NCBI RefSeq assembly: GCF_001194135.2
Contig: NC_068993.1
Location: forward strand, 10,340,665-10,404,664
DNA: 64,000 nucleotides
Origin: Octopus bimaculoides
Taxonomy: Eukaryota
Direction: 5' to 3'
The notes beneath the pieces were generated by a model. It saw only the letters and a list, made by a program, of their open reading frames with translations. It was not told where the DNA came from and did no database searches. Below are positions 17,163 to 63,539 of the stretch, in pieces. Each line of letters begins with the position of its first letter. Position 1 is the first letter of the stretch. The translations under genes were made by a program, and so were the position numbers.

Positions 17163-17262
17163 NNNNNNNNNNNNNNNNNNNNNNNNNNNNNNNNNNNNNN
17201 NNNNNNNNNNNNNNNNNNNNNNNNNNNNNNNNNNNNNNNNNNNNNNNNNNNNNNNNNNNNNN
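17163..17262. other. Assembly gap
   Basis: Run of N. Confidence 1.
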
Positions 17263-19994: not shown

Positions 19995-20310
19995 TTCATC
20001 ACCGTTTAACATCTGCCTTCCATGCTAGCATGGGTTGGATGATTTGACCGAGGAATGGCAAGCCAGAAGGCTGCACCAGGCTCCAATCTGATCTAGCAGA
20101 GTTTCTACAGCTGGATTCCCTTCTTCACACCAACCACTCCGAGAGTGTAGTGGGGTGCTTTTACATGCCACCGGCACGAGGGCCAGTCTGGTGGTACTGG
20201 CAACAGCTACGCTCAAATGGTCTCTTTTTTACGTGCCACCTGCACAGGAGCCAGTCCAGTGGCACTGGCAACGACCTCACTCGAATGTTTTTTCATGTGC
20301 CACCGGCACA
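19995..20310 (-). mobile_element. SINE family A
   Basis: Same family consensus in reverse orientation. Confidence 0.88.
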
Positions 20311-20344
20311 AGGATAACAATTTTGAGGGGTGGGGAAGCTGATT

Positions 20345-21005
20345 ACATCAACCTCCAGCTCTCAACTGGAACACGTATTTCATTGACTCCAAAAGGATGA
20401 AAGGCAGAGTTGTGCTCGGCAGAATTTTAACAAAGAATGTAAAGCTGGATAAAATGTTGCCAAGTATAATAATAATCCTTTCTACTAAAGGCGAAAGGCC
20501 TGAAATTTGGCAGGAGGGGACTAATCAATTACATAGACCCCCAGTGTTTCACTGGTACTTAATTTATTGACTCCAAAAGGATGAAAGGCAAAGTTGACCT
20601 CGGCAGAATTTGAACTCAGAACGTAGAGATGGATAAAACGCTGCTAAGCATTTTGTCCAGTGTGCTGACGGTTCTGCCAGCTCACCACCTTAATAATAAT
20701 AATCCTTTCTACTGTTGGCACAAGGCCTGAAATATTGAGGAGGGGGTGAGTCAATCACATTGACCCCAAAAGGATGAAAAGTAAAGTTAACCTCAGCGGA
20801 ATTTGAACTCAGAATGTAGCTACAGGCAAAATGCAGCTAATCATTTCGCCTGGCGTGCTAACGATTCTGCCAGCTCACCGACTTAATAATAATAATAATA
20901 ATCCTTTCTACTAAAGGCGCCATGCCTGAAATTTGTTGGGAGAGGACTAGTTGATTACATTGACAGTGTTTCACTGGTATTTAATTTATTGACCCTGAAA
21001 GGGTT
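20345..21005 (-). mobile_element. Cluster of tandem SINE family C copies separated by (TAA)n
   Basis: Four repeats of aatcctttctact...aaggcctgaaat / ggatgaaaggcaaagt. Confidence 0.85.
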
Positions 21006-21946: not shown

Positions 21947-22048
21947 TTAGTTATCATTTACTTCTTCAATTTCCCTCATGTATTCTATTTTTTCCACAGA
22001 CAAGTCAGGGTTCATCTGTGTTACAGAACGGATTGCCTCTGCAAGTGC
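21947..22048 (-). CDS. cora: 4.1/coracle last coding exon (ALAEAIRSVTQMNPDLSVEKIEYMREIEEVNDN*)
   Basis: ctttgattccag acceptor; TAA stop at 21947-21949; matches the end of the 4.1 CTD (ALAQAI...PD[ML]SV). Confidence 0.9.
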   Translation of the reverse strand, partial: ALAEAIRSVTQMNPDLSVEKIEYMREIEEVNDN

Positions 22049-29414: not shown

Positions 29415-32400
29415 TGTTGAAACTAGGAGCAAATGGTTTTTGCTATCACTAAACTAAGGCAACAAGGAAAGAAATAAAAGTAAATTTTTAACTCTTTATG
29501 CGGGACCCTAGCATATGGTAACTTCAACACTGGCAGGATTAAAAAAAAAACAAAAAAAACCTCCTCTATGATGCCTTTTCCTATGAAGCTCAAAATATAT
29601 ATTTATTTTGCTTAATGGTTAACTCAATGCTAACTAACCAGACCAATACATTATTTTATTTCCGTAAAGTAGGTAAACCTGTCACAGCCAGTATACGACA
29701 GTATAAACATGTAAGACTAAAAGAACCGAGTCTTAAGTTGTGTCAGAATAAGCAATCTACTGTCAGTTCTTTTGCTCTGTATAGTCAGTCTAATTGGTCA
29801 AATACTTTGGATATCAATGGTATATTCAACCCTTTAGCATTCAGATTATTCTGACAAATGCAATGCTTATTCATTCATATTGTTTTGAATTAATCAGGCA
29901 TTATCTTGTATTGCATTATGACATTGTTGGGTAGGTGTGAAGATCTGGATCTGACTGGTTTAAATATACAACAGGTAGAAAATTTGGGCTGAATATGGTC
30001 AGCTGAAATCATAAAGGGTCAACCCGTTAGCATTTAAGCCTATTTCATGTTCAAACTGGTCAAATCTAGCCTCTCACACCAATACTACAATGTCAATCCG
30101 AAAATAAACAATCACATCATCAAAGGTTCAAAGCCATGACATAATGCACAATTAATTCAAAACAATGGGGTTAAACAAGCACCACATTTGAGACTGTTCT
30201 AGAAACTCGAGACACTAGTTTGATTCTTAACCATAAATTTATTATAATTTTTTTATAGATTTGTTACTCTTCATTAGAATTTGAATGTTTTATATAATTC
30301 TAGAATCCAATATTTTATTTTTAAAGAAGGTTTAAGATAGAATGAAAAAAAAAAAAAAATGATAGCTATTTTAAAAATAGTTTTAAACAAATGGTCAGTC
30401 ATTTGAATGGCAATAATTAATTGGGTAGGGATTCTGTAAAAGGTGGATAAATTCAGTAAAAGATCTCTAAGTCCTAATAAGCTTGGAGAGAGAAAAAAAA
30501 TAATAATAAAACCTATTCCCCATTAAAATATAGAAGTCAAGCTTGTCAGTAACAACAGTATTAACAATAACAACAACAACAAAAGTATTGACAAATGAAT
30601 AAAGAAAAAAAATAAAATAAAACAACACGCAGATCTTTGTTCTGCCAACCAAAATTGTAGTGGTAAAGTTTGCTGAAAAAAAAAAAAATTTCATTCATTT
30701 ACATGCCATAGAAAAACTAAGTAAAGCAAGCAATAAAAAAAAAGGATTTGAAAAAAAAAACACCCCAAAAGCAGCAAGATGCGGAGAAATGGAAAAAAAA
30801 AACCAAACATGTGGGTTTGGAAGGGAATTCAAAATGAAGAGGCAACCAGTTGGGTGGATCGGGGCAGGGGAAAGAGAGATATTTTATAAGAACCATCCGT
30901 AGCAAGGCAACAACAGCAAGCATTCAAATTGGCTTCTACAGTTTTTTTTTTAATCTTGGTTCTTTTTTTTTGCTTTTTAGTTATAATTTTTCCCATTTTT
31001 TTTTTGTTTTGTTTTTCATGATGAACTTACAGTAGTTGTTTCAATCGTCTGTGTTTTTGAACTATGAGCTTGCGAACTGACCAAGACCCCGTCTTCAGAC
31101 ATAGGCTGGCCTTCTACACCCTCTCTTTGGTAAGACACTTTCCTGGTCTCTGTCTTTACTATGGGCACATTCTTGGTAGATATTGGCATTTCACTTAAAT
31201 CTGGGGTATATTTGATACTTTCCGTTGCAATTGTGGGGGGCTGTAGGAGACGAAAGAAGACTTATTGGAAAAAGGTACAAGGCAAAAGCGTTAAGCAAGA
31301 GGCAAGGTTATGTTTATTGCAGAAAGGAGTTGAACTTTAGGATGTCAGGCACTGAAAGACTTTCTAGGGTTCCAGGAGAGAAAAACATACCAGATAGATT
31401 GCAATATTGAATGGACTCATACTAGGAAATGTTTAGTAGTTACAATGGTTATTGAAGATTTAAACTGCTATCATGATATACGCTTATTCACTCCTCACTA
31501 ATGTGATCTGGTGAGATCTTAGTGCTTAGCAAATGTAATAGTATTGAAAAGAAAAAAAAAACCTCATTCATTTAGTGAATACATAGCTAAAACAGTCCCT
31601 AACACTATTTTAAAAAGTTTGCCTTTTAAATTAAAATAAAACCATCTAAACTAATTAGTGTAAAGTCAATAACAACATAGGCCATGGTGGAAATTGGAAT
31701 AGTTAGTCTTCTGCATGAGCCATTTCCAAGGCCAAATTTCCAATTTAGGAACAGAAACAGCGTGCTTTGCTGATTGGAAAATAGGCACCACCTTCATGGC
31801 TGATTAATTATCATTAACGAAGGTATCTTGGCATTAAAAATAGCCACTTCAAAAGCCTCATATAAATTGATTGAAATATTTAAGCCTTTAGCTTTTAGAT
31901 TACTCTGTCAAATGTAATGCTTATTTATTCACATCGTTTCGAATTCACCATGTATTACCTTGTGGTTTTGACAATGTGGTTGTTTATTTTTAAGGTAACC
32001 CTGTAAGGTAGGGGAGAAGCCAGAGCTGGCCAGTCCGAGCATAAAACAGAATATTTTGGTGGGATGTGACTGGTTTAAATTTTAAACAGCTAAGTCCTAA
32101 TAATTTACAAAAATGAATGCAAAATGTTATGGAGCAGGGTTTCTCAGTTAATTTGCATTTATAGACAGGTTGGTATACATGTTTGTCTTATGTCCATTTT
32201 TCCATGCCAGCATGGGTTAGACAGATTGTTGAGGCATTGGTTTTCAGCCAGATGTCCTCCCTGTTGCTAACCCTTATTTGTGTTTTGCAAGTAAAGTATT
32301 TATTTATTTCACATATCTTTGAAGACATGATACAAATGAATGATTTGTTCACAGGAAGAGTGACAAAAGCAACACTGCTTTCAGAGAGCAACTTTTGCAG

Positions 32401-33556: not shown

Positions 33557-35470
33557 GACATTTGCAACAGTCACATAATGCACCTAGACAATAGGGGTAA
33601 TGGGACGGAAAAAAATGCAAATTGAAGTGTTGATCCAGAGAAAGAAAATGTGTACAGTATTAAAAAAAAATGGTAAAGAAACGGGCAGAAAAGCATCCAT
33701 GAAAGGAGAGAAAACATGAAATCAGGACAAAGTTACTTTTAAAAATTGGAAGGATTGAAAAGTTTAGGAAAATGCAAGAAAAATATTTTAAAAGGTAAAA
33801 AAAAAAAAAAAAAAAAAAATTACATGATCACCGCAAACATCACCACCACCATTAAAAAGGTAAAAAAAATACCACCACCACCACCACCACCACAGAGCTC
33901 TAAAATCATCACCATTACCACCACCACCATCAACATTGCTACTACTACTACTGCTACCATTACCATTACCATCACCAGCAGCCAATACCAGCTGTACTTA
34001 CTGGGCTCAGACGACCACCCTGATATGGATGGGTATCAAGCTGGTCCTCAGGATTGCTTCTGGTGTACTTAGGCGGAACGGGTGGAGGAGGCCTTTTGCG
34101 AAGTCCAGTTTGTGGATCCCGGATGCCATTCACTAGGCCGAACTTGCTGCCGAAACCAGCTCTAGTTGTCTGCGTTAAGACAAACATGGACATTTCTGGA
34201 TAGGTTGATAATTTTATTTTTAAGTGCATCGTGTGCCAAAAGTGTTAATAAAAGTTAGTGCCATGTGCAAATCGCTACCGCGAACAAGATGAGGTAAAAA
34301 AAAAAAAAAAGGAGGGAGGGAGAAAAAAAAAAGGCCTTAGCCATTTTTAACTCCCTGCATGCAACCATTTGCACAGATTTTGGCACAATACGCCACAGCC
34401 AACATTCAATGGTATTAACACCCCACCCCATTTGCAGTTACATGGTTCCATGCTTCAAGTTAAATGGCTTTTGCTTTAAACGCAAAAAAAAAAATATTAA
34501 TAAAACCCAGTTAGTCAAATATTTCTTAGTAGCGGAGGGGGATGTGGGGAAACAAATAAAGCAACTAAAATATTGTGGTGTGTAAACTATACACACACAC
34601 ACAATATGTATAAGTGCAGATATCATTATCAAGTGAAACAAGATAAGTTATAAACAAACTTGGAGTGACATTTTAATAAATGATTAAAAAATAAAACAAG
34701 GCAAGAATAGTCTTAGAAGGAAATTGGCAAAACCCATTCTAATATAATTCTAAGACCATGTAAAAAGCACCAAGTTACCAGGTTATGATTTCCATTTACT
34801 TCAACGAGTCACCCTCTGGTATCTAAACTACACTAACATAATACATCTCCTTGACCAAGACTCCCACCACAAATCTAGGGACTAAGTCATAACAAAATTC
34901 AGTTTTGAAGCTGTTGAATCCTAAACAGAATGATAAATTACCTTAATGTAAAATGACGTCACTGCACCCAGAACTAAACAAGGCACAGTTGTGTTAGGAC
35001 AACTCCATTTTACTTTTCTGATGGAAGTATTAAAAAGAATCTTTTGATGAAAATGTGACTATCAACTATGGAGAGGGAAGTAAGGATGGTTTCTGGAGAA
35101 TGAAGTGGATGAGAGGCAAATATTTTTCTGGATAATGGATTGGTTGGTGTATTTTCGGTTAACACAGCCAGAAAACCCTTGCGTTTCCCTTCTGCTCCGG
35201 TCAGTACAATTAAATGTTCTGCTTAATCATAACTAAAATAGTCATAATAAAACAAATTCACAACCAGTGGAATGATGGTGCAACATTTTATCCACTTAGT
35301 CACTTCACAATTTTTGCAGTAAAATCATGTTTAATATAATATGATATTGTTTGGAGGATAAATTACTGACAGGCATCGTGGCACCTTGGGCAAGTGTCTT
35401 CTACTATAGCTTCGGGTCGACCAAAGCCTTGTGAGTGGATTTGGTAGATGGAAACTGAAAGAATCCCGTC

Positions 35471-37183: not shown

Positions 37184-40100
37184 TAATCTGTAATGGAATA
37201 GCAACATCTAAATGGAAGGTGACTTCAGTATAACTCAAAACACACCCAAAAATTAATCTTGGAAATTTAAATTAACAATATTTAATTTTAGCACTATATA
37301 TGTATTAGCATTATCTTTATATTCTTATATAAATACTATGTTATTTTAAAACCTATTGTTATACCAATATGCTATTTTAAAAGTAGTGTTATTTTATATG
37401 CATATTGTTATAAAAATACTATAAAATATTGTTATTATATAAGTATTGTTATAAAAATATTATAATGAAGTGTTATAAAATATCAATTGTTAGAAAAAAT
37501 TTTTTTTAAAATAAAATAAAAAGGAAATTTTTCTTGACATACAATTAAAGATGAAAACAAAAATATAATATTCCATGCAAAATGAAATTATCTGTTACAA
37601 TAAATGTATTAGCATAAAACATGGTCTGAACAGTTAATTTACTAAAGGGAAAAAAAAACAAAAAAAAAACAACAACAACAAAAGAAAAACGTTTTTTTAA
37701 AGATTTGTATAGTTAAAAAAAATTCTATTAACAAAATATCAAATCTTTCAAACTTAGAAATACAACACAAATAATTTCTGAAATATTTCAAAACAAAATC
37801 CATTCTAGCCAAACATCAAATATAAGAATTAAGGCATGGGTATTCTTTAAGTTTTGCTCAAAACAGCAAATGCAGAGAATGTGCCTAGCAATGCAGATTT
37901 CACATGCAAGTATAGATATAGCACATTATTTGGGAAATGTCACAGGATATGCATTTTGTGCAGAAATATTCTAGTATGACAGCCCCCACCACCCTTTCAT
38001 CTTTCTAAAGAGTTATATACAGTTCCTTGAATCTAGTTCTGTCACCTCTATGTTACCTAGTTCATAATCCTGTACCAATCCATAAACCCCTTCCTGGGGT
38101 TTCCTTCTAATGACTAGCCTATAAGAGTTCAGATTGAACCATAAGAGCATCAACGCACCCCAAGTATCTCTAGGCACTAGTGTAGGTTTTTAAAAAAATG
38201 CCAAAACAAAACTGTCTCCTAAGTCTCAAGGGGTTCTTAAAAATCAATATTTAAATCTGGTTTCATGATACTAAAAAAAAAAAAAGAAAACAAAAGAAAA
38301 CTAAATCAAAAAGCAAAAAAATAAACTCGACCCCTTGGATGGGGGGTGCTGGCTCATATCTCAGATTAACATTACCAAATGATCTGAGAACAAAGCATTC
38401 CGTTTAGAAAGCTGAAACATCTGGAGCAGATCTGAATTCATGACCTAAGACCGAGTAATCCAATACCTTATATATCCAGTGTGCTATTCAAATTTTAAAG
38501 TGCTTAATCATTATACTTCCATCCTTAGACATACTGCATGTGTGTGTGCGTGTGTGTATATATACAGATATATTATCATCATTATTTAACATCTGCTTTC
38601 CATGCTGGCATGGGTTAGACGGCTTGACTGGAACTGATAAGTCAGAAAGCTGCACCAGGTTCTAGCTGGATTTGGCATCGTTTCTACTGTGGCTGGACAC
38701 CCTTCCTAATACCAATCACTTTGAGAGTGTAGCAGGTACTGTTTACGTGCCATTTTCATGACACTGGCGATGGCTGTGAATATGATTTCATTCGGCTTGA
38801 CAAGTCTTCTCAAGCTCAGTATATCACGAAAGGTCTCGGTCACTTGTCATTGCCTCTGTGAGGCCTGATATTCGAAGATCGTGCTACTGGCAACAGCCAC
38901 GGCTATGATTTCACTTGGCTTGTAATATGAAACTAGCTATTCAATCCCAGTTACATGAACCATAAAGAGATTTAATTAACGCATGAAAATATATCACAAA
39001 TTGAAAAAATAAAGCTATTTGTTAGATCATAGACTTGATATGCACTTGAGAAACTTTGCATAATAATAATAATAATCTTTTCTGTTATAGGTACAAGGCC
39101 TGATATTTGGGAGGAAGGGGCTTGTTGATTATATCGAGTTCAGAGCTTTACTGAATTTATTTTTTTGACCCAGGAGGGATGAAAGTTAAAGTTGATTTCA
39201 GTGGAATTCAAAAATAGAATGTAAAGATGGACAAAATGCTGCCAAGCTTTTTGTCCAGTAGGCTAATGATTCAGCCAGTTCAGCACCTGAACAATAATAA
39301 TAATAATACTTTCTAATTTTGACACAAGGCCAGCAGTTTTGAGGATGGGGGATTAGTCAATTACACTGACCCCAATACTTGAGTGATACTTTATTTTATC
39401 ATTCCTGAAAGGATGAAAAGTAAAGTTGGCCTTAGTAGGATTTGCACTCACAACATAAAGGGCCACCTCACTGTCTTTAATAGTTCCAAATTTTGCTATA
39501 AGACCAGCAATTTCAGTGGGAAGGGTTAGTTGATAACACTGACCCTAGTACTTGATTTTATCAACCCCCCACTAAACGAGGAAAGATAAAGTTTGCCTTG
39601 GTGGTATTTGAACTCAGAACGTCAAGTGCTGGAAAAAATAATGCAAGGCATTGTTCTGACACTCTAGTGATTTTGCCAATCTATCAACCTAAAGCTAATA
39701 ATAATTGTTTCTAACATAGGCACAAAACCTAAAATCTGAAGGGAAGGGGGTTAGTCAATCATATCAGCTCCAGGGAGCTGACTGGTACTTTATTGATCCT
39801 GAAAGGATGAAAGGCAAAAGTATTTTTGACAGGAGCTGAACTGAGTGTGTTAAGTGACTTAACCCTTTTGATATCAATCTGGCTGAAACTGGTTCTGGCT
39901 CTATAGTACAAATGTTTTGTTTTCATAAGTTTTGAATTAAATTCTTCCACCAAACTTTAGTCACAATTTATGTTCCTAACACTAGCTTAATGATAACTAA
40001 GTTATTTTATTAAATTCTTTTTTATAGTTAAAATAATTGAGAGAAACACAGAGCATCTCAAAAAAAATACGGTAATGAAAGGGTTAACTGAATACCACAA

Positions 40101-43100
40101 AATATTTTGTCTGATGATCAATACTCCCAACCCACCACAAACACCTTTGTCAATAGTATTGATATTACTTATTAGCTGACAACCCCCTCATATTTTGTGA
40201 GGAAGGGGCTAGGCATTTGGATTGAAGCATTCTGAATTAAGCCAAATATTATGGGCAAGTAACAAAGACAAAATAAACTGAAGAAAACATTTTTAAAAAG
40301 AAAAAAGATGCAAAGATCATATTTGAGTGTGTGAATATTAAGTGGATAGCAACCTACCTTATCTGGTTGTGAAACTGGTAAGAAGGACATTTTGTTGTCA
40401 ATCCAATTCTCTTGTCTCGTAGTGCCTGCACCAGCAACACCGGGTACAACACAAATCCTGCTGCCTTCAGGACCATATCCACTAACACCTGGAGCATAGC
40501 CACCAGGAACTTGTACACTGGCACCAGGACCAAAAGTCCTGCCTTCAGAAACAACTCTGTTGTCAGTTGCATACAGTCTGCTGTCGGGCCCACATGGTTG
40601 ATAGCTGGGGCTGTATATTTTACCGTTTGGACCATAGAATCTACCGTCAGGACCAAAATATGCACTGTCAGGACTATATGATTCTCCGTCAGGACCATAC
40701 ACCCTGCCATCTGGACTGTATACTTGTCCTTCTGGGCCATAACCTCTACCGTCTGGACCATACAGTCCACCATCAGGGCCATACAGTTTGCCCTCAGGAC
40801 CATATATAGAGCCACCAGGGCCATGACCTTTGCCATCAGGGGAATAAAATCTTTCGTCAGGACTATACAAGGTGTCGTTGGGACCATACATTTTGCCATC
40901 TGGACTGTACAGTCGATTATCAGGACCAAATATCTTGCCGTCGGGACCGAATAGTCTGCCGTCAGGACCATAAACTAGAACATCAGGGCCATATGGCTTA
41001 CCATTAGGACTATACACCCTACCATCTGGAGTATAAACACTGTTGTGGGGACCATAACCCTTGCCATCAGGACCATGCAATTTACCGCCAGGGCCGTACA
41101 CCTTACCACCTGGACCATACACTTTGCCGTCAGGACCATAATTTCTTCCATTTGGACAACATACGACACCATCAGGGCCATAACCTTTGCCAGGAGAGGA
41201 ATAAAATCTTTTGTCTGGACTGTACAGTTTACCATTGGGTCCCACCATTTTGCCATCAGGAGTGAACTCCCTACCACCAGGACCAAATACTTTGCCGTCT
41301 GGACCATAGAATCTACCATCGGGACCATAGTATCTACTGTCAGGACTGTATAATTCTTTGTCAGGACCATAAACCCTGCCGTCTGGACCATACACCTGTC
41401 CTTTGGGACCATATCCCTTGCCATCAGGGCCATGTGGTTTGCCATCAGGACCAAATATTCTACCATCAGGAGCAACTATTTTGCCACCAGGACCATAACC
41501 TTTGCCATCAGGAGCATAAAATCTTTTGTCTGGTTCGTACAGTTGTCCATTTGGACCATACAATCTGCCGTCAGGACTGTACGCTTCACCATTCGGACCA
41601 TAGCCTTTGCCATGAGGGTCTGGAAGTCCAAAACCTTTCCCTTCTGGAGCTTTGTATCCTTTTCCTTCTGGAAGCCCACACACTCTGCCATCAGGAGTGT
41701 ACAGTCGATTATCAGGGCCACATATCTGGCCATTGGGACCAAATAGTCTGCCATCAGGGCTGAAAACTTGACTATCTTGACTGTATGGCTTTCCATTAGG
41801 ACCATACACCCTACCATCTGGGGTATAAACACTGTTGTTGGGGCCATAACCTTTGCCATCACGGCCATGCAGTTTACTGTCAGGGCCATACACCAAGCCA
41901 TCTGGGCCATATACCTTGCCGTCAGGACCATAATTTTTGCCACTTGGACAACATACGACACCATCGGGACCATACCCTTTGCCGTCAGGGTTGTAAAACC
42001 TTTTGTCTGGACTGTATAGCCTATCATTGGGTCCCACTAGCTTGCCATCAGGTGTGAACAGTCTGCCTCCAGGACCAAATACTTTGCCATCAGGACCATA
42101 GAATCTACCATCGGGACCATAGTATCTACTGTCAGGACTGTATAATTCTTCGTCAGGACCATAAACCCTACCGTCTGGACCATACACCTGTCCTTTGGGA
42201 CCATATCCCTTGCCATCAGGGCCATGTGATTTGCCATCAGGACCATATATTCTACCATCAGGAGCATATATTTTGCCACCAGGACCATAACCTTTGCCAT
42301 CAGAAGCATAAAATCTTTTGTCTGGTTCGTACAGTTGTCCATTTGGACCATACAATCTGCCGTCAGGACTGTACGCTTCACCATTTGGACCATAGCCTTT
42401 GCCTTGGGGAGGATCTGGAAGGCCATACCCATTTCCTTCGGGAAGTGCAAAACCTTCTGTTCCTGGAGACCCACAAACACCACCATCTGGACTGTACAGT
42501 TTATCATCAGGGCCATATATCTTGCCGTCGGGACCAAATAGTCTGCCGTCAGGACCATAAACTAGAGCATCAGGGCTGTATGGTTTACCATTGGGACCAT
42601 ACACCCGACCATCCGGGCTATAAACACTGTTGTGGGGACCATACCCTTTACCATCACGGCCATGCAATTTACCGTCAGGGCCATACACTTGACTATTTGG
42701 ACTACACACCTTGCCGTCAGGACCATAGTTTCTGCTGTCTGGACACCATACAGTGCCTTCAGGGCCATAACCTTTGCCATCAGAGTCATAAAATCTTTTG
42801 TCAGGACTGTATAACCCACCATTGGGTCCCACAACTTTGCCATCAGGGGTGAACTCCCTACCAGCAGGACCAAATACTTTGCCGTCTGGACCATAGAATC
42901 TACCATCAGGACCATAGTATCTACTGTCAGGACTGTATAATTCTCCGTCAGGACCATAAACCCTGCCGTCTGGACCGTACACCTCTCCTCTGGGACCATA
43001 TCCCTTGCCGTCAGGGCCATGTGGTTTGCCATCAGGACCATATATTCTACCATCAGGAGCAAATATTTTGCGACCAGGGCCATAGCCTTTGCCATCAGGA

Positions 43101-46100
43101 GCATAAAATCTTCTGTCTGGTTCGTACAGTTGTCCATTTGGACCATACAATCTGCCGTCAGGACTGTATGCCACACCATTCGGACCATAACCTTTATCGA
43201 GAGGAGCTTCTGGAAGGCCGTAACCTTTTCCTTCTGGACACTTGCATGCATCAGTCAAGGGCACAGCACTGGGATAGAGTTCTCCATTGACACTAGGCTA
43301 GAAAAGAAGACACAAAATATATAATTGTAGTGTAATTTGTAAAATGAGATAACAAAAGAGCAAATACACAATATGTAGTCAGTCAAACAGAAACATCAGT
43401 CTCAACTATCAGATGAATTCATAAAAGATTACCTTCTTGTACTGGTTCTAATCAATATAAGAAAAGTGTAAAAAAAACAACAAAACGATATAGAAGACAA
43501 AGTGACTGATAAATTCAGATATGACTGATAACCAATGTTAACAACAAAAATACAATAATATATATACGGAACAAATTCAACATATATCCGTACAGAAACA
43601 GTACAAGATTTAAACACTGCATAAATATGTAAATAAATACATTGTGAATTTCAAATGTTCTTTTTCTTTATTAATGTATTTACATTTGTTAATGTTAATT
43701 AATTACATACACATAATATAATTTTGTGTGTGTATGTGATAATTTTGGTATGGCTTTATTTGGCTGGGTGCATTACATTGTACTACCAGCACCAGAGTGA
43801 TTGTCTACTATGGCTAAAGTATCTCTCTGTACTGTGTCAGTTTATATTTAGAATTGCTGTTTTTCTCGCTGGATGCAAGTGGTATGGTTCGTGTCTTACC
43901 ACAACACTACTTGAAGGTAAGGTGTTCGCAGTGCAGAAACGTGAGGAAAGATGTGTGCTTAGAGCAAGCTGAGGGATTTGTTTTTGGTTGGGTGGGTGAG
44001 CTTCTGGTAGATATGTGACTAGCATAGAGCACATGAATATCTAAAAGTGGGAGAAGAAGGCTCACAGTAGACTGTTGAGTGAAATAATGGCAATTGGCTG
44101 CTGCTGTGCGAAAGCCATAATTTGAGGCTGAGGTTACCTCAATAAAACCCAACCTGGAAATGTTATGTTGCCTAAACATGATGGAAGGGAAATTTAAGCA
44201 AATATTTTATAACCCTACATCCTCCTTTAGACATATTGAAAAGGGAAAACAAAACAAAATTAGCAGGTGACATCTGACAAAATAAAAAGCTTCAGATGAC
44301 AGCATTAAATGGGAGAACCCTACAAAAATGGAAGCAAATAGTGTTATCTGGGCACAGCAGAGAAAAGGGTAATCTTCATAAACACTGCATAATCAAGACC
44401 TCTGTTTAAACACCAGAGATATTTGGGAAATGTAGACATTTTGAAAAGCATCTAGCATGTTATTGGGAAACACTACCTTCACTAGACTAAATGCTCCCCT
44501 AAATAAAAGGACATTTGAAAAACTGCTTTACATTAGGTTCTCTTCAACTTTGCTCTGCCATCTCTTCTCTCTTCATCTTTCCCAGTCAATTCAACCATAT
44601 TTTTTCTTCCAGCACTCATTTTCCTATTTTGACACTTGCTATTATGTTCTCTCACTCTCCTATCAACTCTCCTTAATTTTGTGTAACATAGAATTATGTT
44701 CTTGATTTTCAGCATTATTTTTTTCTAGAGTCTCTTTAAGTTTACACATGAAATAGCCAAGCAAGAATAACTCACACTCAAGAGTTATTCATCTTAGCAC
44801 AAGTGGAAGTTTTTAGATACAAATTTTTCAAAATATCTCTAAGCACATGGTGATATGTGGGTCTGAATATTCAGTATGAAACTCTTGTTTGGCCAGTATT
44901 TTAATTGTATCTATTTATAAATATAATTAATTACATTACCATATGGTTTTTGAGTTGAACACTATATTTTTGGATACCTTTAATATTTTTACCCAAACAT
45001 AATTCTATATAATCTAGTATTTAAAAATCAAACATTTGGTAACAGAAACACTAAACCTGAAAAGAGAAAGTGTTGTTAGATATGAAAGAAGAATTGTCTG
45101 TTTCAGAAAATGATTACTTAACAAAAAAAAAAAAAAAAAAAAAAAAGGAAAGAAATAAAATCCCCCTCCCCTCTCAATAAACAAGAAAACATCGCTATCA
45201 GATTGGTACCATTTGATCTTGAGAAAAGTTTCTTGCATCTATCTATTTGTTGAACTGCTAAGTTACAGAACATAAACACGGACATACACACTGTTTGGTA
45301 CAGTTTCTATCCATTAAAATTAGCTCAAAAGGTATTGGTTGATGTGAAGTACTGGTACAAGGTGCCACATGGTTGCACATCAAGCTTAATCACACAGCCA
45401 TGCCTGCAGCTTTATACATTATATATATATATATACTCTTTTACTGGTTTCAGTCATTGGACTGTAGCCATACTGGGTACAGCTGCACAACCTTAAATGG
45501 TTTTGGTAATTATATTGACTCAGTACATATTTTATCAATATCTCTTTACTGAACTGCTGATTTACAGGACATAAACAAATTAATACCAGACGTCAAGTGG
45601 TCTTGAACTTGAGCATAATTTTATTGAGTTGAATGCTTGTATGCAGGCAGTCAAACACATATACCCACAAAACCAAGCATTACACAATAAGCTCATGAAT
45701 ATACGTTAGCTTTAGATCAGACCTAACCCACAAGATTTATAATTAAAGTGATTCCAGCTGTGCCCATTTTTTTTCAGACAGTGTATCCTTAACTATATTA
45801 TGATCCCATGCACCTTTTTCTTTTTCAAATATGACAGAATGTGATTTAAGAAATTCAGCCATAATTTCTAGCACAACAAAAGACCTAAAAGCTCCCGGTT
45901 ATGTAATTTCACTGCAGCAGAAAGTGTTCTACGCATGAAACAAAAAATATGCAATAATTACACTTGGGCCCTTCAGAATTATATTAGTGACCCTAATTTT
46001 AAAATAGAGGTTAAAATGAAAAATTCAGTATGTAAGAGAAACAGCATTGGAAAAGATTTGACAAATGCTGGATTTTATTTATTTAAAAATTTTTTTATCT

Positions 46101-49100
46101 AGTGATCTGTTTTCACAATTTGATGCAATTCAAGTGCCATAGAGTCAATAGACATCTATGTGGTACAGCTAAAACATGAATACGTTNNNNNNNNNNNNNN
46201 NNNNNNNNNNNNNNNNNNNNNNNNNNNNNNNNNNNNNNNNNNNNNNNNNNNNNNNNNNNNNNNNNNNNNNNNNNNNNNNNNNNNNNNNNNNNNNNNNNNN
46301 NNNNNNNNNNNATATATATATATATAAAGATTCTATTTGTAAATTTTTTTTTTTGAGACAAACATTTTCAGATCAGTTGTATTTGTGTGTAGATGAAGAT
46401 TATATATAAAGACACAATGTAATGTTTTCTAATATTTTATCATTTCCAAACATGAGGGTGTGTCAGTGACTAAGATGTGATGACAGATGGAGCATGCACG
46501 AAACAAAAGATAATGCTAACATGAAGCTACGATGACATTTCATACATTTTATATATGTGCAGTTGCTATAAAAATCATTTTACACAGAAAGACAACAAGT
46601 AAAGCACAAGAAAATACAATAAATAAATGATTAACAAAATAAAACAAAAAAAAAAAGGATGTTGGTTAAAACAGAAGTGACAACAAAAGCTCAAGGGATG
46701 ACCATGCCTTATATATGGAGGTTTGAAGGATAATGGGATTGAAAGTGTATATGCATTCGGATTGATGAATGACAAGAGAGAGAGAGAGAGAGAAAGTAGA
46801 GAAGAGATGGAAGTATAGTAAAGAGATGGAAGTAGAGTGAAGTTGGTAAAATAACTTCCACATTGGAAAGGAATGCCAACAGGCATTTATAAACATTAAC
46901 TAAACAACAATATAAGTGATATAGTGACGTTAATGACATTGACAGTAACAAGAACAATGGGTTAAGACGCAAAAGGAACAAGAGGAGGACAGGAATACTT
47001 GGATACAGGAGCGGGAGGAGGGATGTTCTACAACAGACACCTGACAACACCGAGGAAAGGTAGAAACACAACACAAAAAAAGAAACAAAGGGTTGATACA
47101 TATGAGGTGTGGAGAGAAACAGGTGAGAAAAGTGAAGATGTATAGGACAGGGTATTAGCGGTGAGGGGGGGGGGGAAATGACTCCACAAACAAGCAGGGT
47201 GACATTTCACAGTAAGCAAGAGGACGACAGGGGTGGGGGAATGGAGGAAAAAAAAAGGTATTATTATTGGATACATGTCTTAGAACATCACTTAGCAGAG
47301 TACTTTCTAGAAATTGGAAAACAGAGATTAGGAGAGTAGGAAACTAACTATACATGCCGAGATTCTATTTCTGAAGATGGTTATGAAACGTAGTAAGCAG
47401 ATGAAGATTATAGGTGGGACTCTAGCTAGAAATAAGTACATCCATGCACAGAGCTGTCAACATTTTTTTAATTATTCAATTTAAAGACTGATCTATATTG
47501 TAGAATAGGTAAATTCAAACAGAATTTGCCCACCTATTTAAACTGATCATATCCAGCCCAAATATTCTTCCTGTTTTTAGTGTTCAAACCAGCCAGATCT
47601 GACCTCTCATACCTATCCTGCAGTATCATTCTATAAGTATACAATCGCATCATTGAAATTTCAAAGCTGTGAGATAATGCCTGATTGATTCAAAACAATG
47701 TGAATGAATAAGCATTACATGTGACAGAATAATTTGAATGCTAAAGGGCTAAATGTAGCTTAGAATAGATACTTTGTGTGTGCATACATGTGTTTGTATT
47801 ATTAGTTTCAGCTGTTGAACTGAGTCTATGTTAGGGCACTGCCTTCAAGGAATAATCAATTATAACAAATGCCAGTGCTTAGTAAGTATTTATTTTAGTC
47901 ATCAACCATGGAAAGATGAAACAAAGTGTGCTATCATAGGATTATTACCTCCGCCTTAGTGAAGGCAGAGATATTCTTTTCAGTCATGTTTGTTTGTCCG
48001 TGGACAAGATATCTCAAGAACGACTGGATGGATTTGGATGAAACTTTCAGGGATGTTTGGCCTTATGACTGACACAAACTGATTAGATTTTGGGATCGAT
48101 CCGGTACCAGACAAGGATTCTGGATTATTTTTCTTGTTTTTTTTTACATAATTTTTGAGAGCGGTCAGGTTCGTATTTAGTATTTTCGTTTGTGAGAGCA
48201 GTCGAGTTTATTTCAGATATTATCATTTTAAAAATCATCTCTGGCTAATCATTGAGAGGATGTTGGTGTTGCCTTGGTGGAGGTTTGCGCTTTCTGAGTG
48301 CTCTTATTATTATTATTATTATTATTTTCATCATTAAATAGGTACAGTCATATCTTCTGAAGTAGATTTGTTTAAAACAAAACTTCAAAAAAAAAAAAAA
48401 AAAAGGTAGAAAAGAAGCTAGCTTATTGATAGAGATTTAATTAGTACCATGGCAGGTCAAGTGACTATATAACTTCTTTCATTAGCTTATGAAGGTTTAT
48501 GTATATTTTTACCAAGGTCACAACCTATGATCCCAGTCATGACCATCCTGCCCTCTGCTTTTCTACCAGTGTATCCATGACGCTATCCCATGTACTGTTC
48601 CCTTTTTAAGATGACAGATTTAAAGGAGATTTGCCGATTTCTTGCAGGTCAGGAGACTGCATAGCAGCATGTGCATTAATGGCTGAATATATGAAGATAT
48701 GTAAATGTAGACCAAGTGTAGGTTAGAATTGCGTAAAATTGAGTATATAATGTGTGTATATCTAAGAAATTAGAACAGCACTAGTTGAACAGCTCTGATA
48801 TAGAAAAAATACATGAGAGTGATAGAGAGAGAGAAAAAGAACCGGGCCATGTTCTTATTAGTAGACAAAGGAGTAGATTGCAGATAAGTATTACAGGTTG
48901 GTGTCGGCAAACACCACCGACAGACAGAAGATGGCAAACCTTCTCTACCAATTCTTGTTCTTCGTCTAGAATAGGGGGCAACTTTGTCTTCATTTGCTCT
49001 GCCTGAGCATCAAATGTTGTCACCTTATCCTTGCCCTCACCTTCATCATCAGAGGAATCGGACGAAGAGGAGGAGGAGGAGCTGGATGAATGCTGTAAAG

Positions 49101-52100
49101 ATGATGAGGTGATAAGAAGCATGAAGGTGCGCACAAAATGATGGCAACTAATGTAAGAGTACGTTTGTTCTTAAAACCAATGAATGAACTGCTAAATTTT
49201 AAGAAGATCACATTTGGGTGGGAGGGATGCTTGTTTGTCTTGTGTTATCTTGCTGTAAATGTCTTATTTTCAAACTATGTAGTTTAGAAAGTTTGGATGA
49301 GATGAATGATAAATTTCGTCTTAGGTTTGATGTTTGTCCAAAGAAATGTGAAAAAAAAATTTTTTTCTTTCTTTTATTCCAGCAGATGATTTGCATCAAG
49401 TGTGAACTATGCAATATGAAAAAAATTTGAATAGAAATAGTCTGAAAAATTAACAAAGCTATCCTTACTTCTATATATTTGTTTGCATCTATGTACATCG
49501 ACACGTCTTTGTATATAAGTATATGCGTGTATGTATGCATTATGTATGTGTACATGCATATTAGCATTATGAGTAAGTGTACATGTATATTTGTTAATAT
49601 ATCTATTGTATATGTGTGTGTGTATTTGTAAATATAGCAGATTAATTAATTTTTAAAACAAAATTATACAAAATACAAGATTAAATACACAAAGAAAAAA
49701 TATAACCATAAACAAATAAAATTTTAAAAACAAACAAAACATAAAATAAACATTAATAATAAAAAAAAAACAACAAAATTTTTCAAAATAAATACAACAA
49801 AATACAAACTGATAAACAAAAATGTCTGATATATAACATGTTTTCTTTCATGAGCATGCATATATAGCAGCGAGAAGTAGAAGTGACAGCATGAAAATGT
49901 TCAAGATGAAGTTAATGGTTAAGCCTTAATGGTAAAACCCACTTCAGGTGTATTCAATGTGGGGTGGTTGATTGGTTGCAATAACTGAAATACTAACAAA
50001 AACGACTCCAGTTCAAATCCCTGCAAAGTCCAGTGTGATACTTTTTAACTGTCTTACTTCACAAACAATATATCCAGATTAAGACATAAATCGTAGTCAC
50101 TAAACTATTTAACTAAATAATAGATTTGGCTACAATAAATAATTGAATGTATTTAATATTAATAACAATTATAATAATTCTTTCTAATTTTGGCACAAAG
50201 TCAGCAATTTTAGGGAAAGGACACTAGCCCTGATTACATTAACCCCAGTATTTAACTGGTACTTATTTTACTGAGGATGAAAAGCAAAGTTGACCTTGGT
50301 GGAATTCAAAATCAAAACCAAGAACCAGCTTGTTGCCTTAATAATAACAATAATCCTTTCTACTATAAGCACAAGGCCTGAAATTTTGGGGGAGGGGGCT
50401 AGTCAATTATATCAACCCCAGTACGTAACTGGTACTTTTTGCCCAGCGTGCATATAATTCTGCCAGCTCACCACTGTAGTAGTAGTAGTAATAGCAGCAG
50501 CAGCAGTTCTTTCTACTATAGGCACAAGGCCTGAAATTTCTGGGGACGGGACCAGTTGATTACATTGACCTCAGTGCCCAACTGGTATTTAATTTTATCG
50601 ACCCCCACCAAAAGGATGAAGAGCAAAGTTAACCTCAGTGGCATTTGAATGTAAAGAGCTGGCAGAAGTGCTAGTAGGCATTTTGTCTGGAATGCTAATG
50701 CATTGCTGTTCTCTTACAATGTGCCAAAAAAAGAAAAAAAAAACCTCTCCTGATTTCCAGGAAGGAGAAATACAAAAGTTGTGACATTCATGCCTTGGCC
50801 AAGTACATTTATTATCAAAGTGAAGTGATTCCAAACGAAAACTAAAAGTTGGGATGCTTGAATTCCAATATTTTAAATCCAGGTTTGTCCCCGTTAAAAG
50901 GGGTGGCTGGATCTACCTCACTCTTACAGCAACCACTCACATCATCTTGACCGGTTTTGGGCGCCCTCCTTCTTCAAGTCAACCCTCCCAATTTCCTCCT
51001 CCACGTTTTCTTTGGTCGACTTCACCTTCGTGGTTCATTCACTTTAAACTTTAGCACTTTCCTCAGAACATGCTCCTCCTCCTTCCTCAACACATGTCCA
51101 TACCACCATGCTCCATTCATCCTTGCCAGCCGTTCCACTGATTCCTCCAACCCCAGTATCTCCAAGTCTTTAGCCTTCCTTTTAGCCAATAGTTTCACAC
51201 CACACATTGCTCTCACCTGATAGTTCAAATTGAAACTGGTATTTAGCTTTTGTTTAGTGACAAAGTTCTTATCGTCATCACTGACATCTATTTTTTCCTC
51301 AAAAGCATTAAGCCAGAAGAATAACAGCTACATTTTCCCAGTTTGAAAACATGTACAAACACAATTAAGATGAAATAAACATACTTGCTGCAATGCAAAA
51401 GTTACGTGAAACACAAAACAAACCAAAGGCAATCATAAAAAAAAAGGCAGAACGCAATAATTCAGTTGAACACGGAAGAATAGTTAGTTGATGATGAATG
51501 ATAATGATGTAAACACATTCCAAATGCCATTGTCTTCCCACAGCCATAATGACCATTATTATATATGGCAACCATTCCCAGCCTCTCCCTTATATCCCTA
51601 ATGATGAGAGGGATTCAACCTGAAAGAGTCATTGAAAGGAACTCTGCAACAAGTACCATACATTAGCTTATAAACGCACACACACATTCACAAAGATTGT
51701 CTGACACTGCATCAATAGACCCTCTCATCAGGTGAGAACAGGAGATGGATGGAAGCAAGGAAGGACTGGCTGTGGGAATTGTAGTGGGTGATAAAGAACG
51801 GCGATAAGTGCTAAGAAAATCTGAAACCATCAAAATATACAAAGCAAAATGCAACTGGTTTTGTTACAGGTGATGCAGGTAGGTGGGATCTGCAGATTTT
51901 ACACAGTATGCGTGATTTAATTTATAAGGGATTACTTTGAAGGGGAAAAAAAAATATTTCTAGCTGGGGTCATGATAGTAAGAAATAAAAAAAAAAAGAA
52001 GTAGCTAGCTGGACAGTTGAATATAATTACCAGTTTACAATATATGCATATACACACACACATTTAAGACTATGTCTGTACAACCCCTGATGGCACTGAT

Positions 52101-55100: not shown

Positions 55101-58100
55101 GATGGTTTAGTTATGATGGTTTAGTTATGATGGTTAAAATAAAACCTTCCATGCTGGCATGGTTTGCCAGGAGTTGACCAGGCAGAAGACTGCACCAGAC
55201 TTCTGTGTCTGTTTTGGCAAGGTTTTTATGGCTGGATGCCCTTCCTAACACAAAAAAGTGTTATTTTTTATGCAGGCCTCTAAAATGTATCAGCTATTGT
55301 TGATAATTTTTGAATAACTTTTTTTTAGAGCTATGAAATATATTTATTTTCAAATTTTCTATAGGATTTTGTTTTTATATTCTCTTTCTATTAAAAAAAG
55401 TCAAATTAAATTATTTTTAAAACCATAATTTTATCTCAAGAATAACATTAACTGGTTTAAAAGAGAAAAATAAAACTGCTTTTTATGAACAAAATTAAAA
55501 CTGTTACCTATCTTGAATATTATACAAAATACTGTAAATATGGAACAGCACTTAATATATTAATATATATTTGAACTGCTTTTAATCTCGTTCATAAAAT
55601 TGCCTAAGAAGTGCTTGGAATAATAATAATAATAATAATAATAATGATGATGATCCTTTCTACTAAAGGCACAAGGCCTGAAATTTGGCGGTGGGTGGAG
55701 GGAACTGGTTGATTACATCCACCCCAGTGTTTCACTGGTACTTAATTTATTGACCTCGAAAGGATGAAAGGCAAAGTCAACCTTGGTGGAATTTGAACTC
55801 ACAACATAGCAACAGGCGAAATAACACCAAGCATTTTATCCGGCACGCTAACGATTCTGCTAGTTTGCCACCTTATTAATCATAATAATAATAAAAAATT
55901 TTAAACTGACCGTGCAGGCAATCATTTAAAACCTTAAAACCTCAGAATGCACTTGTTAGACAACAAAGTGATAATTGCGAACCTGGAAGGGCAAAGATGC
56001 CTTGAAATATACCATGATGAGGTGAAGAAAATATTAGCCAAAAAAGCATCATTCAAAGAACAGAACAAATCAGAAGATTGCAGTTTGAAAGATAAACATG
56101 ATAAATGGATTAAAGCAAAAACAGTGATTAGATTTCTGCATCATCTACAACTGCTGAAAATGCAGCAGGGCATGCTGAACAAACAGAAATGTCTGTTGTC
56201 ACCTTTTCGGATCTCTTTTTAAAAGGATTTCGCATAGGACACAGAAGTCCAGACGATGACCTATGGACGCTCTTCTGTAAGACCATGGAGATATTATATA
56301 TACACAGATATATATATATGTAAATGTTTTATATATATATATATATACACAAATACACGCCTTATAAAAATAGTCTAAGGATGTAATAATTAATAAATGG
56401 AATACCTAATTTGAAACATAAGTTCCATTAAAAATCTGAATAAAAATTGATGGAGACAGCTTGACAAATAATTACTGATGCGTAGTTTACAAGTTAAAAG
56501 TTGTAAAGAATTCATTCAAAAATGGATTTTATGAATCTTAAAATATAATTGAAAGATATGTATGTAAATTTTACAGTTAAATACCACACTTAATTTTTGA
56601 AACTTATGACTATATTAAAAATGAAGTTACAAAGAAAAATCGATAGTAAAAAAAAACAAAAAAAACAAAACAAAGATATTTGGTATATTTTGTAAAAACG
56701 AAATTGTAGTTAAAATATAGATGGAAGAGTAAGTAGTAAACACACAAGCTTGGAAGTTAGCAAAAACTATCTAAAAGAAACTTTTCAAGTCATATTCTTA
56801 TTAACAGTTCCTAGACGAACTTCAAAAGCAAAAATATTACAATTATAAAGTCACACTAGCAAAGTTAATTACGAGTTTTGGAAACAAATTTTCTGTTGCT
56901 TGATCAATTCTTAAACCATAATCAGAACACAAATTACATTAACTCAATTCGTAACAACAAAATCTATCCATCAATTATTTTCGAACCAATTTTATTCTAG
57001 CTGTAACTTAACCCTTTACTATGTAAGCCAATCATATCTTGCCCAAATATTCAACTGGTTTTACACTCAAACTAACCAGATCTGGCCTCTCCACCTACAT
57101 ATAACTAAAACAATTGCAGCGTGGAAGCCGTTTAAAAACACACAAAAAAGATTCACTTCAACATTTAAATTTAATTTATCAAAATATTTTTGTCGCTCTG
57201 AAACTGCAACCTGATCACTGACAAAATTCCGTGCTCTAATTTTGGCCAGTAGGGGCAGTTGGTACCAGCAACTTCAGGTTGATGAAATAAAATACTTTGC
57301 TTGTACTTATTTTATTGAACCCAAAAAGATGAAAAGAAAACTGATCTTGATGGGATTTGAACTCACAATGTAAAGGGCTGGAACAAATACTGCAAAATAT
57401 TTTCCTGATATTTTCACAATTCTGCCAATCTACTGCTTTTAGCTGAATTATAAAATTCATAGTAATAAAAGGAAACTACATTTTCTTCTGAATGAAGTGC
57501 TTCCATTTCTTTTTCGAGATACTTAAAGAAAAGAATTGTGTTAATAGCTTCCAAATTGAACTTAGGGCTTCAGCTAATAACCAACTTTCTAAATCAGTAT
57601 TTAACATGTGATCTAAACTGATATTTCTGTTGCATAAGAAGTTATTCAGGTCTTTCTTAGCCTAAAGATTTAAGAGTTAAAAAAAAAATCAATGCAAAAA
57701 ATATACTACAATAATGATTCTTATCTCAAAGACATTAGTGATCACTTGGTTAGGTGAAATATTTATAATGAAGAATTGGAATCAGATATCAGATTAAACC
57801 GAAGATCTTGGTGCCACTACAATTGCCTATGATGTGAAATGTTAATGCAAGCTCAAGTGACATTCAGTAAAATCAGTTGCAATAAATTCCAGCATTTATT
57901 ATGGATATATTATTGATAATAGATAAACAGCTAAATTAATCCCTAAAGATTTTTTTTTTAATGCAGAACCATGAGTCAGCAAAGTTAAACATAAACTATT
58001 GAGGATCAGCTTTCTAACTTTGAATCAACAAGACTACATAATCATTATCCCAACGTATGTCTTCCTTCCCATCTTGAAACTTCTCTAAATGAAAACGATC

Positions 58101-62321: not shown

Positions 62322-62965
62322 CTGTTGCAATTATACAGGGGAGTTAGAAAATTTTATGTTAAAAAAAAAAACAAGAAAACCCCCCCAAAAAACACAGATT
62401 CAATACATCCCTTTCATCATTATCATCATTTTTATCTCTCTTCCTTAATACTTTTTCATAGACAGAATAGAAACCAGAAGTCTTCAATACATCAATGCTT
62501 CTACATCAGCTTCAATGCTTGTAGAACTAGAGAGCATTCCTACATGTTCTACTGACTGCAGATCCCAATGTGTGGAGGTTTTATTGTTTCAGAAGAGGTA
62601 GGCAAGTACATAAATGCATACATACACATATATACAGTCACATATACACTTACATACACACACACACGAAATACATGTATACCCTCATATGCATGCATGC
62701 GTCCATACGTACATATTTAAAGCGTTAAAATCCGGATTAATGATAGAGGACATAACTGTATCTGGAGAATGACAGAAACCTGCTAAACAAGCAGTTTTAT
62801 GTAAGAGGGTATGACCAGGCGTTTAAGTGAATATTTGTTTCTCTTCAATACAAGCCTTTAATTAAAGACATCTGATGCTGTCTTGTCAATAAACTGTATC
62901 CTGATCACAATGAAAACACAACACAAGACCATAGTTAATAATAAATGAATACAACTTTTGATTTT

Positions 62966-63221: not shown

Positions 63222-63539
63222 NNNNNNNNNNNNNNNNNNNNNNNNNNNNNNNNNNNNNNNNNNNNNNNNNNNNNNNNNNNNNNNNNNNNNNNNNNNNNNN
63301 NNNNNNNNNNNNNNNNNNNNNNNNNNNNNNNNNNNNNNNNNNNNNNNNNNNNNNNNNNNNNNNNNNNNNNNNNNNNNNNNNNNNNNNNNNNNNNNNNNNN
63401 NNNNNNNNNNNNNNNNNNNNNNNNNNNNNNNNNNNNNNNNNNNNNNNNNNNNNNNNNNNNNNNNNNNNNNNNNNNNNNNNNNNNNNNNNNNNNNNNNNNN
63501 NNNNNNNNNNNNNNNNNNNNNNNNNNNNNNNNNNNNNNN
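63222..63539. other. Assembly gap
   Basis: Run of N. Confidence 1.

Follow-up and report, generated by a model that had tools for sequence, protein, structure and literature searches.

A 2940-nt heptad-repeat exon in the protein 4.1/coracle gene of Octopus bimaculoides, probably grown by tandem expansion of a short conserved exon

Proteins of the 4.1 family link membrane proteins both to junctions and to the spectrin-actin skeleton. Giant exons are known in membrane-skeleton scaffolds from the inserts of 480-kDa ankyrin-G and 440-kDa ankyrin-B and from AHNAK, and it is tissue-specific inclusion that defines the giant ankyrins. Here we describe a giant exon encoding 120 near-perfect heptads on the minus strand of a 64,000-nucleotide stretch of the Octopus bimaculoides genome (contig NC_068993.1, forward-strand positions 10,340,665 to 10,404,664; hereafter the window, to which all positions refer), and present well-supported evidence that it is an internal coding exon of the octopus 4.1/coracle orthologue. 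Like the ankyrin and AHNAK exons, it is a single multi-kilobase exon that adds a long, repetitive and probably extended segment to a membrane-cytoskeleton adaptor, and at 2940 nt and phase 0/0 it has the size and symmetry of the ankyrin type and can be included or skipped. It differs from them in sharing no sequence homology and in replacing a commonly used short exon rather than adding an extra cassette, and the ankyrin parallel is reasonable as an analogy only. By descent the gene belongs to the 4.1/Coracle family, which includes Drosophila Coracle, a protein of 1698 aa in which about 1200 residues separate the FERM domain (1-383) from the C-terminal domain (CTD, 1585-1698) (PMC2132682). A long, poorly conserved and alternatively spliced central region is therefore already known in this gene family, and what is new at the octopus locus is not a long 4.1 protein as such but the heptad module, confined to one exon and absent from the 4.1 proteins searched, together with its apparent origin from a 59-aa exon. 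The exon and its parts are as follows.

40358-43297, minus strand: giant coding exon, phase 0/0, recognised by its open frame, splice signals, heptad register and a ratio of non-synonymous to synonymous divergence (dN/dS) of 0.22-0.33
43193-43297, minus strand: non-repeat 5' lead-in PSVNGELYPSAVPLTDACKCPEGKGYGLPEAPLDK, 97% identical over 36 aa to an Octopus sinensis fragment (L004, see below)
42398-43192, minus strand: super-repeat 1, 265 aa, 34 heptads and an LPEG/GLPDP linker
41606-42397, minus strand: super-repeat 2, 264 aa, sharing 80-82% protein identity with super-repeats 1 and 3
40814-41605, minus strand: super-repeat 3, 264 aa, continuing in register into a partial fourth copy (52 heptads in total)
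40358-40588, minus strand: degenerate repeat tail and conserved 4.1 motif ...TTRQENWIDNKMSFLPVSQPDK, ending at the donor (tblastn with residues 129-209 of the transcript product P0007, E=4e-9)

The giant exon is genuinely coding. Translation of positions 43297 to 40358 yields 980 stop-free codons in 2940 nt (3 x 980), a length that leaves both ends in phase 0, and the chance of such a run is about 1e-30 at the composition of the window (35% GC, AT-rich) and about 1e-24 at that of the exon itself; the other five frames of the same stretch contain 5-107 stops. The acceptor at 43297 consists of a pyrimidine tract and AG (...tgtgtcttcttttctag|CCTAGT), its 'tag' doubling as an in-frame stop, and the donor at 40358 reads GATAAG|gtaggt. 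Because the earliest in-frame Met lies at about codon 690, the exon is without a usable initiator. When the exon was scanned for internal splice signals, we found no strong in-frame acceptor and no GTRAGW donor, and it is therefore probably included or skipped as a whole. Pairs of super-repeats differ by a dS of 0.25-0.42 and a dN of 0.075-0.092, with a significant excess of synonymous changes (Fisher p = 4e-12, 5e-6 and 4e-8), and several synonymous codons are in use at the invariant Pro, Gly and Asp positions (CCT 46, CCA 21, CCC 12, CCG 3; GGC 42, GGT 29, GGA 11). From the resulting dN/dS we conclude that the frame is under purifying selection. An assembly artefact was rejected as an explanation for the exon, which contains 0 runs of N and whose super-repeats lie 11-14% apart in DNA, and so was an antisense gene, the plus-strand frames holding 11-46 stops. 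An exact look-up of the genomic open reading frame at 40175-43264 returned no record.

The 120 heptads follow the consensus x-[YF]-[GS]-P-[DN]-G-[KR] and keep perfect register through three runs (34, 34 and 52 units), within which we found 0 indels of 3 nt that break the seven-residue period. Position 2 is Tyr or Phe in 101 of the 120 units and position 4 is Pro in 111, while Asp or Asn occupies position 5 in 98, Gly position 6 in 87 and Lys or Arg position 7 in 85. Tandem Repeats Finder reported 21-nt periods with matches of 64-80%, low values by which the array is old and diverged rather than a fresh microsatellite. At the higher level the array consists of three super-repeats of 264-265 aa, each closed by an LPEG.../GLPDP linker, and a partial fourth. 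Up to this point the initial annotation, which had described an uninterrupted 980-codon minus-strand frame with no initiator ATG, a pyrimidine-tract/TAG acceptor and AAG/gtaggt donor with phase 0 at both ends, and about 120 such heptads, agrees with the translation and with the splice sites read in the sequence.

Several lines of evidence place the exon in the 4.1/coracle gene. The first is the presence, further downstream on the same strand, of exons that encode the end of a 4.1 protein:

34002-34169, minus strand: next 4.1 exon, 56 codons, phase 0/0, TTRAGFGSK...RKRPPPPVPPKY...GGRLSP (acceptor cag|ACA, donor CCA|gtaagt)
31031-31240, minus strand: 4.1 CTD exon, 70 codons, probably alternative (Pfam 4_1_CTD E=9e-6, splice sites)
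22884-22973, minus strand: 4.1 CTD exon, 30 codons, YRTEKDGMIETRVEKKVTITSDNDDIDYDA (Pfam, alignment to P0007)
21947-22048, minus strand: last 4.1 CTD coding exon, ALAEAIRSVTQMNPDLSVEKIEYMREIEEVNDN and stop codon (Pfam, alignment to P0007)

The three CTD exons match positions 1-48, 53-79 and 79-105 of Pfam 4_1_CTD (PF05902; E = 9e-6, 1e-3 and 3e-3) and are 57-89% identical to mollusc 4.1 proteins. The 31031-31240 exon is present in bivalve 4.1 proteins and absent from two transcript products of another, cephalopod-like species, P0007 and P0196; since both transcripts skip it, it is probably alternatively spliced.

These two products also bridge the donor of the giant exon. P0007 is the 325-aa product of a 1.7-kb transcript contig (Logan SRR9970002), and P0196, from the same species, is a 760-aa product with FERM_N/M/C, FA and CTD domains. 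P0007 aligns to the window in four blocks:

40588-40358: P0007 residues 129-209
34172-33999: P0007 residues 209-267
22973-22884: P0007 residues 268-297
22048-21965: P0007 residues 298-325

The first block stops exactly at the donor at 40358, where WIDNKMSFMPVIKPEK in P0007 corresponds to WIDNKMSFLPVSQPDK in the last ~28 codons of the giant exon, and the next begins at the cag|ACA acceptor at 34169. The junction KPEK|TTRSG, which occurs in P0007 (...KPEK|TTRSGYEKK...) and in P0196, thus equals 40358|34169 in the window. Bivalve 4.1 proteins have IDRKMQFIPVTPP at the place of the giant exon tail. As the tail matches 4.1 proteins of both cephalopods and bivalves, we conclude that the giant exon ends, on its 3' side, in ancestral coding sequence of 4.1 and that its donor junction is conserved. 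Within this tail (40364-40405, minus strand) lies the short linear motif W-I-D-N-K-M-S-F-[LM]-P-V, which is kept from bivalve (IDRKMQFIPV) to cephalopod 4.1 proteins; a transcript that skipped the giant exon would lack it.

On the acceptor side, the exhaustive HMMER search described below retrieved a protein (P0074) that matches the opening 37 codons of the giant exon at 95% identity. It is XP_036355969.1, named 'glutamic acid-rich protein-like', from Octopus sinensis contig VCDQ01003438.1 (locus L004). The locus contains a continuous, intronless frame, ...YDRSRSMDDVNRDRIASTESF...EVAAEKEKGKEKGRLGLFGKFRKHPKDKDKGKTPPASPTEKEMTQ|PSVNGELYPSAVPLTDACKCPEGK... (TEKEMTQ|PSVNGELYPS), in which positions 5722-6001 correspond to 43299-43017 of the window at 96.8% DNA identity, and the similarity begins exactly at the acceptor AG. 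The part upstream of this point is the octopus counterpart of the variable region that follows the FA domain in P0196 and in a further locus (L001), the cDNA-like fragment beginning just past the FA region (YDRSRSMDD...). The fragment carries two frameshifts relative to the window and sits between the HTH_48 (upstream) and Transposase_1 (downstream) halves of a mariner-like element. In our reading it is a processed pseudogene, now truncated, and preserves the fossil of a messenger RNA in which upstream 4.1 exons had been spliced to 43297. XP_036355969.1 itself (L004 5001-6001) appears to be a mis-modelled, frameshifted, intronless 4.1 mRNA fragment within the mariner-like element. Its model excises a 111-nt 'intron' with non-canonical GG..AG ends that corresponds to the segment GKEKGRLG...EMTQ. 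P0007 contains a homologous segment and P0196 does not, which makes this segment a cassette exon; the gap in the model presumably stems from transcripts of the real gene made without it.

None of the upstream exons joined in the O. sinensis copy matched positions 43298-64000 of the window, and likewise no FERM exons were found within the window. The upstream exons therefore lie outside it and the preceding intron exceeds about 20.7 kb, unless an exon is hidden in an N gap (46187-46311 or 63222-63539). The window has four such runs of N, at 17163-17262, 17982-18290, 46187-46311 and 63222-63539; none falls in the giant exon, and the last two, in the upstream intron, could hide a small exon. In the same intron, a Ser/Asp/Glu-rich open frame at 48941-49093 (minus strand; flanks cag| and |gtttgc, phase 0/0) is a candidate alternative 4.1 exon, although neither the O. 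sinensis cDNA-like copy nor the related transcripts contain it. The giant exon is accordingly placed between the FERM/FA/Lys-Glu-rich half of the protein, whose exons lie beyond the window, and the CTD exons. The junction evidence is indirect, coming from the genome of a congener for the acceptor and from the transcripts of another species for the donor, and it bears out the initial annotation, which had assigned the exon to a 4.1/coracle gene upstream of its CTD exons and had proposed splicing into 43297 and out of 40358 to 34169: the intronless O. sinensis fragment supports the former splice, the orthologous transcripts reproduce the latter, and the CTD exons and orthologous tail support the assignment.

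Comparison with the related species also suggests how the array arose. In P0196 the homologous exon (...EKEHK|ATEDLVKGGLPAGVYGVPAGGQPEYNGEVYPGGIVNAGTPSEEQWIDNKMSFMPVIKPEK|TTRSG...) has 59 aa and includes a few Y-G-x-P-x-G-like elements. The octopus lead-in PSVNGELYPSAV weakly resembles PEYNGEVYPGGI of this short exon, the octopus tail VQVPGGYAPGVSGYGPEG...TTRQENWIDNKMSF is related to its tail, and about 900 heptad residues stand between the two. With related sequence on both sides, the array is therefore best read as an internal tandem expansion of a pre-existing exon, and we infer that it grew by tandem amplification inside a short conserved exon ending in the WIDNKMSF-PV motif. A Tyr-Gly-Pro-x-Gly seed could have given rise to the heptads, and a block of about 38 heptads would then have been copied about 3.5 times. 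In a more distant mollusc (L003) we found no counterpart of the giant exon, and in another cephalopod genome (L002) the 10-kb flank compared stops about 3.8 kb upstream of the homologue of the 34169 exon. As to usage, the short homologous exon is included in both related-cephalopod transcripts and its motif recurs in bivalve 4.1 proteins; moreover, the heritable O. sinensis cDNA copy contains the 5' end of the giant exon. Given the two transcripts, the cDNA copy and the lack of strong internal splice sites, common inclusion is no less likely than a rare isoform restricted to certain tissues, the initial annotation having proposed a tissue-specific one. As the replacement of a commonly included exon, and with no strong splice sites inside it, the array probably belongs to the main 4.1 isoforms with the WIDNKMSF motif and not only to a rare one.

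Searches for relatives of the array returned many sequences of the same rhythm from unrelated contexts. The exhaustive HMMER search covered 1.84 billion cluster representatives of about 15 billion proteins and gave 632 matches at E<=1e-3, of which the best 150 were listed. Those inspected among these 150 repeat every seven residues with a Pro-x-Gly or Pro-Asp-Gly turn and occur in unrelated settings; none of them is a 4.1 protein, and only P0074 shares descent. Among the 1.84 billion representatives, no annotated or predicted protein with this array was found save the RefSeq protein XP_036355969.1, which touches it. These results accord with the earlier statement that no such heptad module was known in 4.1 proteins. 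A word-indexed protein search with the whole exon gave only three weak bacterial matches. In it, and in a second search of this kind with upstream sequence and one super-repeat, only 8000 candidates were scored, low-complexity words dominated and P0074 was missed. We rejected as homologues a gel-forming mucin with GPPGTTA heptads (P0017), frog AHNAK (P0019; E=1e-50, a periodic and compositional match), two secreted proteins of mayflies, P0018 and P0020, that are named 'collagen-like' and repeat GQIYGPDGRP, a protein with MIHGPNG heptads and a MYND finger (P0021), and many bacterial PDGT[VI] heptad proteins, all of them convergent matches of period 7. Pfam matches such as Proteasome_A_N, DUF4440, GBD_IRG7_N and NHL, of about 15-25 residues each, are artefacts of the recurring word SPDGR. 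A collagen was likewise rejected, since Gly occurs only at heptad positions 3 and 6 and the period is 7 and not 3; the names of the 'collagen alpha-like' type on the mayfly matches are automatic annotations. In the literature, queries on the motif and on octopus 4.1 brought up nothing beyond collagen peptides and work on other subjects.

Three kinds of described repeat resemble the heptad closely enough to be compared with it. Among solved-structure chains, only the disordered heptads of the C-terminal domain of RNA polymerase II (Pol II CTD) can be aligned to the array, their Tyr and Pro falling in register (E=1e-22). Over more than 220 residues the two have in common a period of 7 and a unit with Tyr in first and Pro in third place, and both are long, turn-rich and of low complexity. 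However, the octopus unit is without Ser2, Ser5 and Ser7 and instead has Gly at 2 and 5, Asp at 4 and Lys/Arg at 6, and the protein contexts are unrelated, with no common descent. Elastomeric repeats are known from resilin (GGRPSDSYGAPGGGN), flagelliform silk (GPGGX) and elastin (VPGVG). With these and the mayfly proteins the array shares turns of the Y-G-(A/P)-P-x-G type and a high content of Gly and Pro, P0018 being 41% identical over its repeats, whereas those proteins are secreted and cross-linkable with periods of 15-27 aa and the octopus array is cytoplasmic and strictly heptad. Lastly, bacterial G-P-[DN]-G-x-[VI] hairpin repeats (DotG/TrbI-linked; Pfam Bflower, DUF3659; for example P0001 and P0025) have in common with it the G-P-D/N-G turn and the basic and hydrophobic residue that follows. 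Because these Pfam families do not match the exon, and unit length and context differ, we regard this resemblance as convergent.

The product of the giant exon has a computed mass of about 103 kDa, close to the addition of about 100 kDa that had been predicted, and an isoelectric point of 6.1. The array contains 23.4% Gly, 14.5% Pro and 14% Tyr plus Phe, with a charged fraction of 0.24 and a net charge near 0, and its hydropathy of 0.38 lies below the Uversky boundary (0.415), in the disordered range. AlphaFold2 assigned a mean predicted local distance difference test score (pLDDT) of 38.9 to one super-repeat (264 aa, 3-row alignment) and of 38.6 to 14 heptads (98 aa), the latter with an 81-row alignment made of sliding 14-heptad windows re-slid by MAFFT and hence not a true deep alignment. 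In both models the predicted template modelling score (pTM) is about 0.2 and 0 residues exceed a pLDDT of 70, and 2-residue strands recur every 7 residues at low confidence. None of the repeat-fold Pfam families (beta-flower, DUF3659 and others) rose above noise on the exon. The beta-hairpin solenoid of the initial annotation is thus not borne out by either prediction or by composition.

While the identity of the exon is well supported, its mechanism of action is inferred. We lean, with moderate confidence, towards a reading in which a 4.1 exon underwent tandem expansion into a flexible spacer or spring that is probably part of the main isoforms. The insert would be a net-neutral polyampholyte of about 103 kDa in which every seven residues bring an aromatic side chain, a Pro-Asp-Gly turn and a basic side chain. 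Set between the FERM end at the membrane and the proteins bound by the CTD, it may serve as a long and flexible spacer rich in beta-turns, or as an entropic spring, that lengthens and cushions their connection; its regularly spaced Tyr and Arg/Lys could in addition support weak multivalent association with itself or with partners. Several points weigh against this reading. Twice the Pro plus the Gly fraction of the array (2P+G) is 0.52, below the threshold of about 0.6 or more for elastomers, and the strict register over up to 52 units, with periodic strands in the low-confidence models, would fit an ordered periodic fold as well. The whole exon is known in this species from the genome, and the cDNA-like fragment of O. 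sinensis spans only its first 280 nt. The O. sinensis fragment could in principle be an assembly artefact, although its 3% divergence, its two frameshifts and its position inside a mariner copy lead us to favour a genomic retrocopy.

An ordered rod, the first suggestion of the initial annotation, would account for the register, which is unbroken in runs of 34, 34 and 52 heptads even though the DNA units are only 64-80% alike. Here each heptad would form a strand of 2-3 residues and a G-P-D-G turn, and the array a long beta-meander or beta-solenoid of a single layer with a Tyr ladder, giving a rigid spacer of about 50-60 nm. Pro-Asp-Gly is a classic turn former, both AlphaFold2 models contain 2-residue strands at every seventh residue, and bacterial G-P-[DN]-G-x-V-I-G repeat proteins among the matches carry Pfam beta-flower domains. 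Yet with a pLDDT of about 39, a pTM of about 0.2 and no residue above 70, no match of the beta-flower, DUF3659 or other repeat-fold families to the exon, disorder predicted from composition, and three-residue strands whose single hydrophobic or aromatic position would leave little core, we consider such a rod unlikely, if still plausible. A bolder version, in which the array is a new ordered architecture, a nanospring of about 120 units built as a Tyr-ladder beta-meander or turn-spiral that arose de novo from a 59-aa linker exon and entered the main octopod 4.1 isoforms, strikes us as doubtful; if true, it would mean that the membrane skeleton had been re-engineered in this lineage, for instance to serve extremely deformable tissues. 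We also think it rather unlikely that the array is chiefly an assembly domain, the second suggestion of the initial annotation, or a docking domain, in which about 100 Tyr and about 110 Arg/Lys stickers drive condensation or lateral self-association of 4.1 at the membrane or form a docking and phosphorylation platform like the Pol II CTD. Its Y-x-P heptads do run in register with the YSPTSPS of Rpb1, each heptad offers one aromatic and one basic residue at a net charge near 0, and the amino acids of the motif are conserved (dN/dS 0.2-0.3); however, the match to Rpb1 is periodic and compositional rather than homologous, the Ser2/Ser5 phospho-sites are absent, and the single Asp and single Lys/Arg of each heptad would be expected to promote solubility.

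Two further explanations deny the array a role in the 4.1 protein or a place in it. It could be a tolerated passenger, a runaway in-frame minisatellite in a linker without a function of its own, retained only for leaving the reading frame intact; as a symmetric exon it may often be skipped. In line with this, 4.1 proteins vary in the length of their central regions, which are poorly conserved, the transcripts of the other cephalopod lack the array, and the residues between FERM and CTD of Drosophila Coracle were dispensable for the localisation and rescue tested (PMC2132682). Against it stand a dN/dS well below 1 at a dS of up to 0.42, the invariance of Pro, Gly and Asp despite synonymous turnover, the lack of register-breaking indels and of any stop in 980 codons; because of this signal of selection we judge a functionless passenger very unlikely. 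The unusual sequence, and its absence from database 4.1 proteins, might also point to a separate nested gene or a transposon-derived open reading frame in a 4.1 intron. This is extremely improbable, being contradicted by the lack of an initiator, by two ends that are splice sites used with 4.1 exons and by a 3' end that encodes the conserved 4.1 motif.

An insert of about 103 kDa between the conserved ends of 4.1 would alter the reach and mechanics of the link between membrane and skeleton in octopus cells. The locus also offers a clean and datable case of the birth of a giant repeat exon, from a short conserved exon through heptads to super-repeats, with purifying selection already visible. 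In addition, octopus 4.1 gene models may need correction, XP_036355969.1 apparently being a mis-modelled retrocopy.

Elsewhere in the window, exons of an SNF2-family helicase (Pfam SNF2-rel_dom, Helicase_C) at 955-15091 on the plus strand lie tail-to-tail with the 3' end of the 4.1 gene. At 59200-62500 we observed at least 3-4 tandem units of about 850-900 bp, each with an open stretch of about 70-90 codons (IDTCFNSELITIDKLIT...QADSWH...) on the minus strand and a matching one on the plus strand. Two interspersed repeats resembling short interspersed nuclear elements occur in many copies on both strands, for example at 20000-21000, 39150-39960, 50270-50720, 55560-55880, 1-750, 4127-4460, 13003-13330 and 14688-15030, and one copy abuts the O. 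sinensis cDNA-like fragment.

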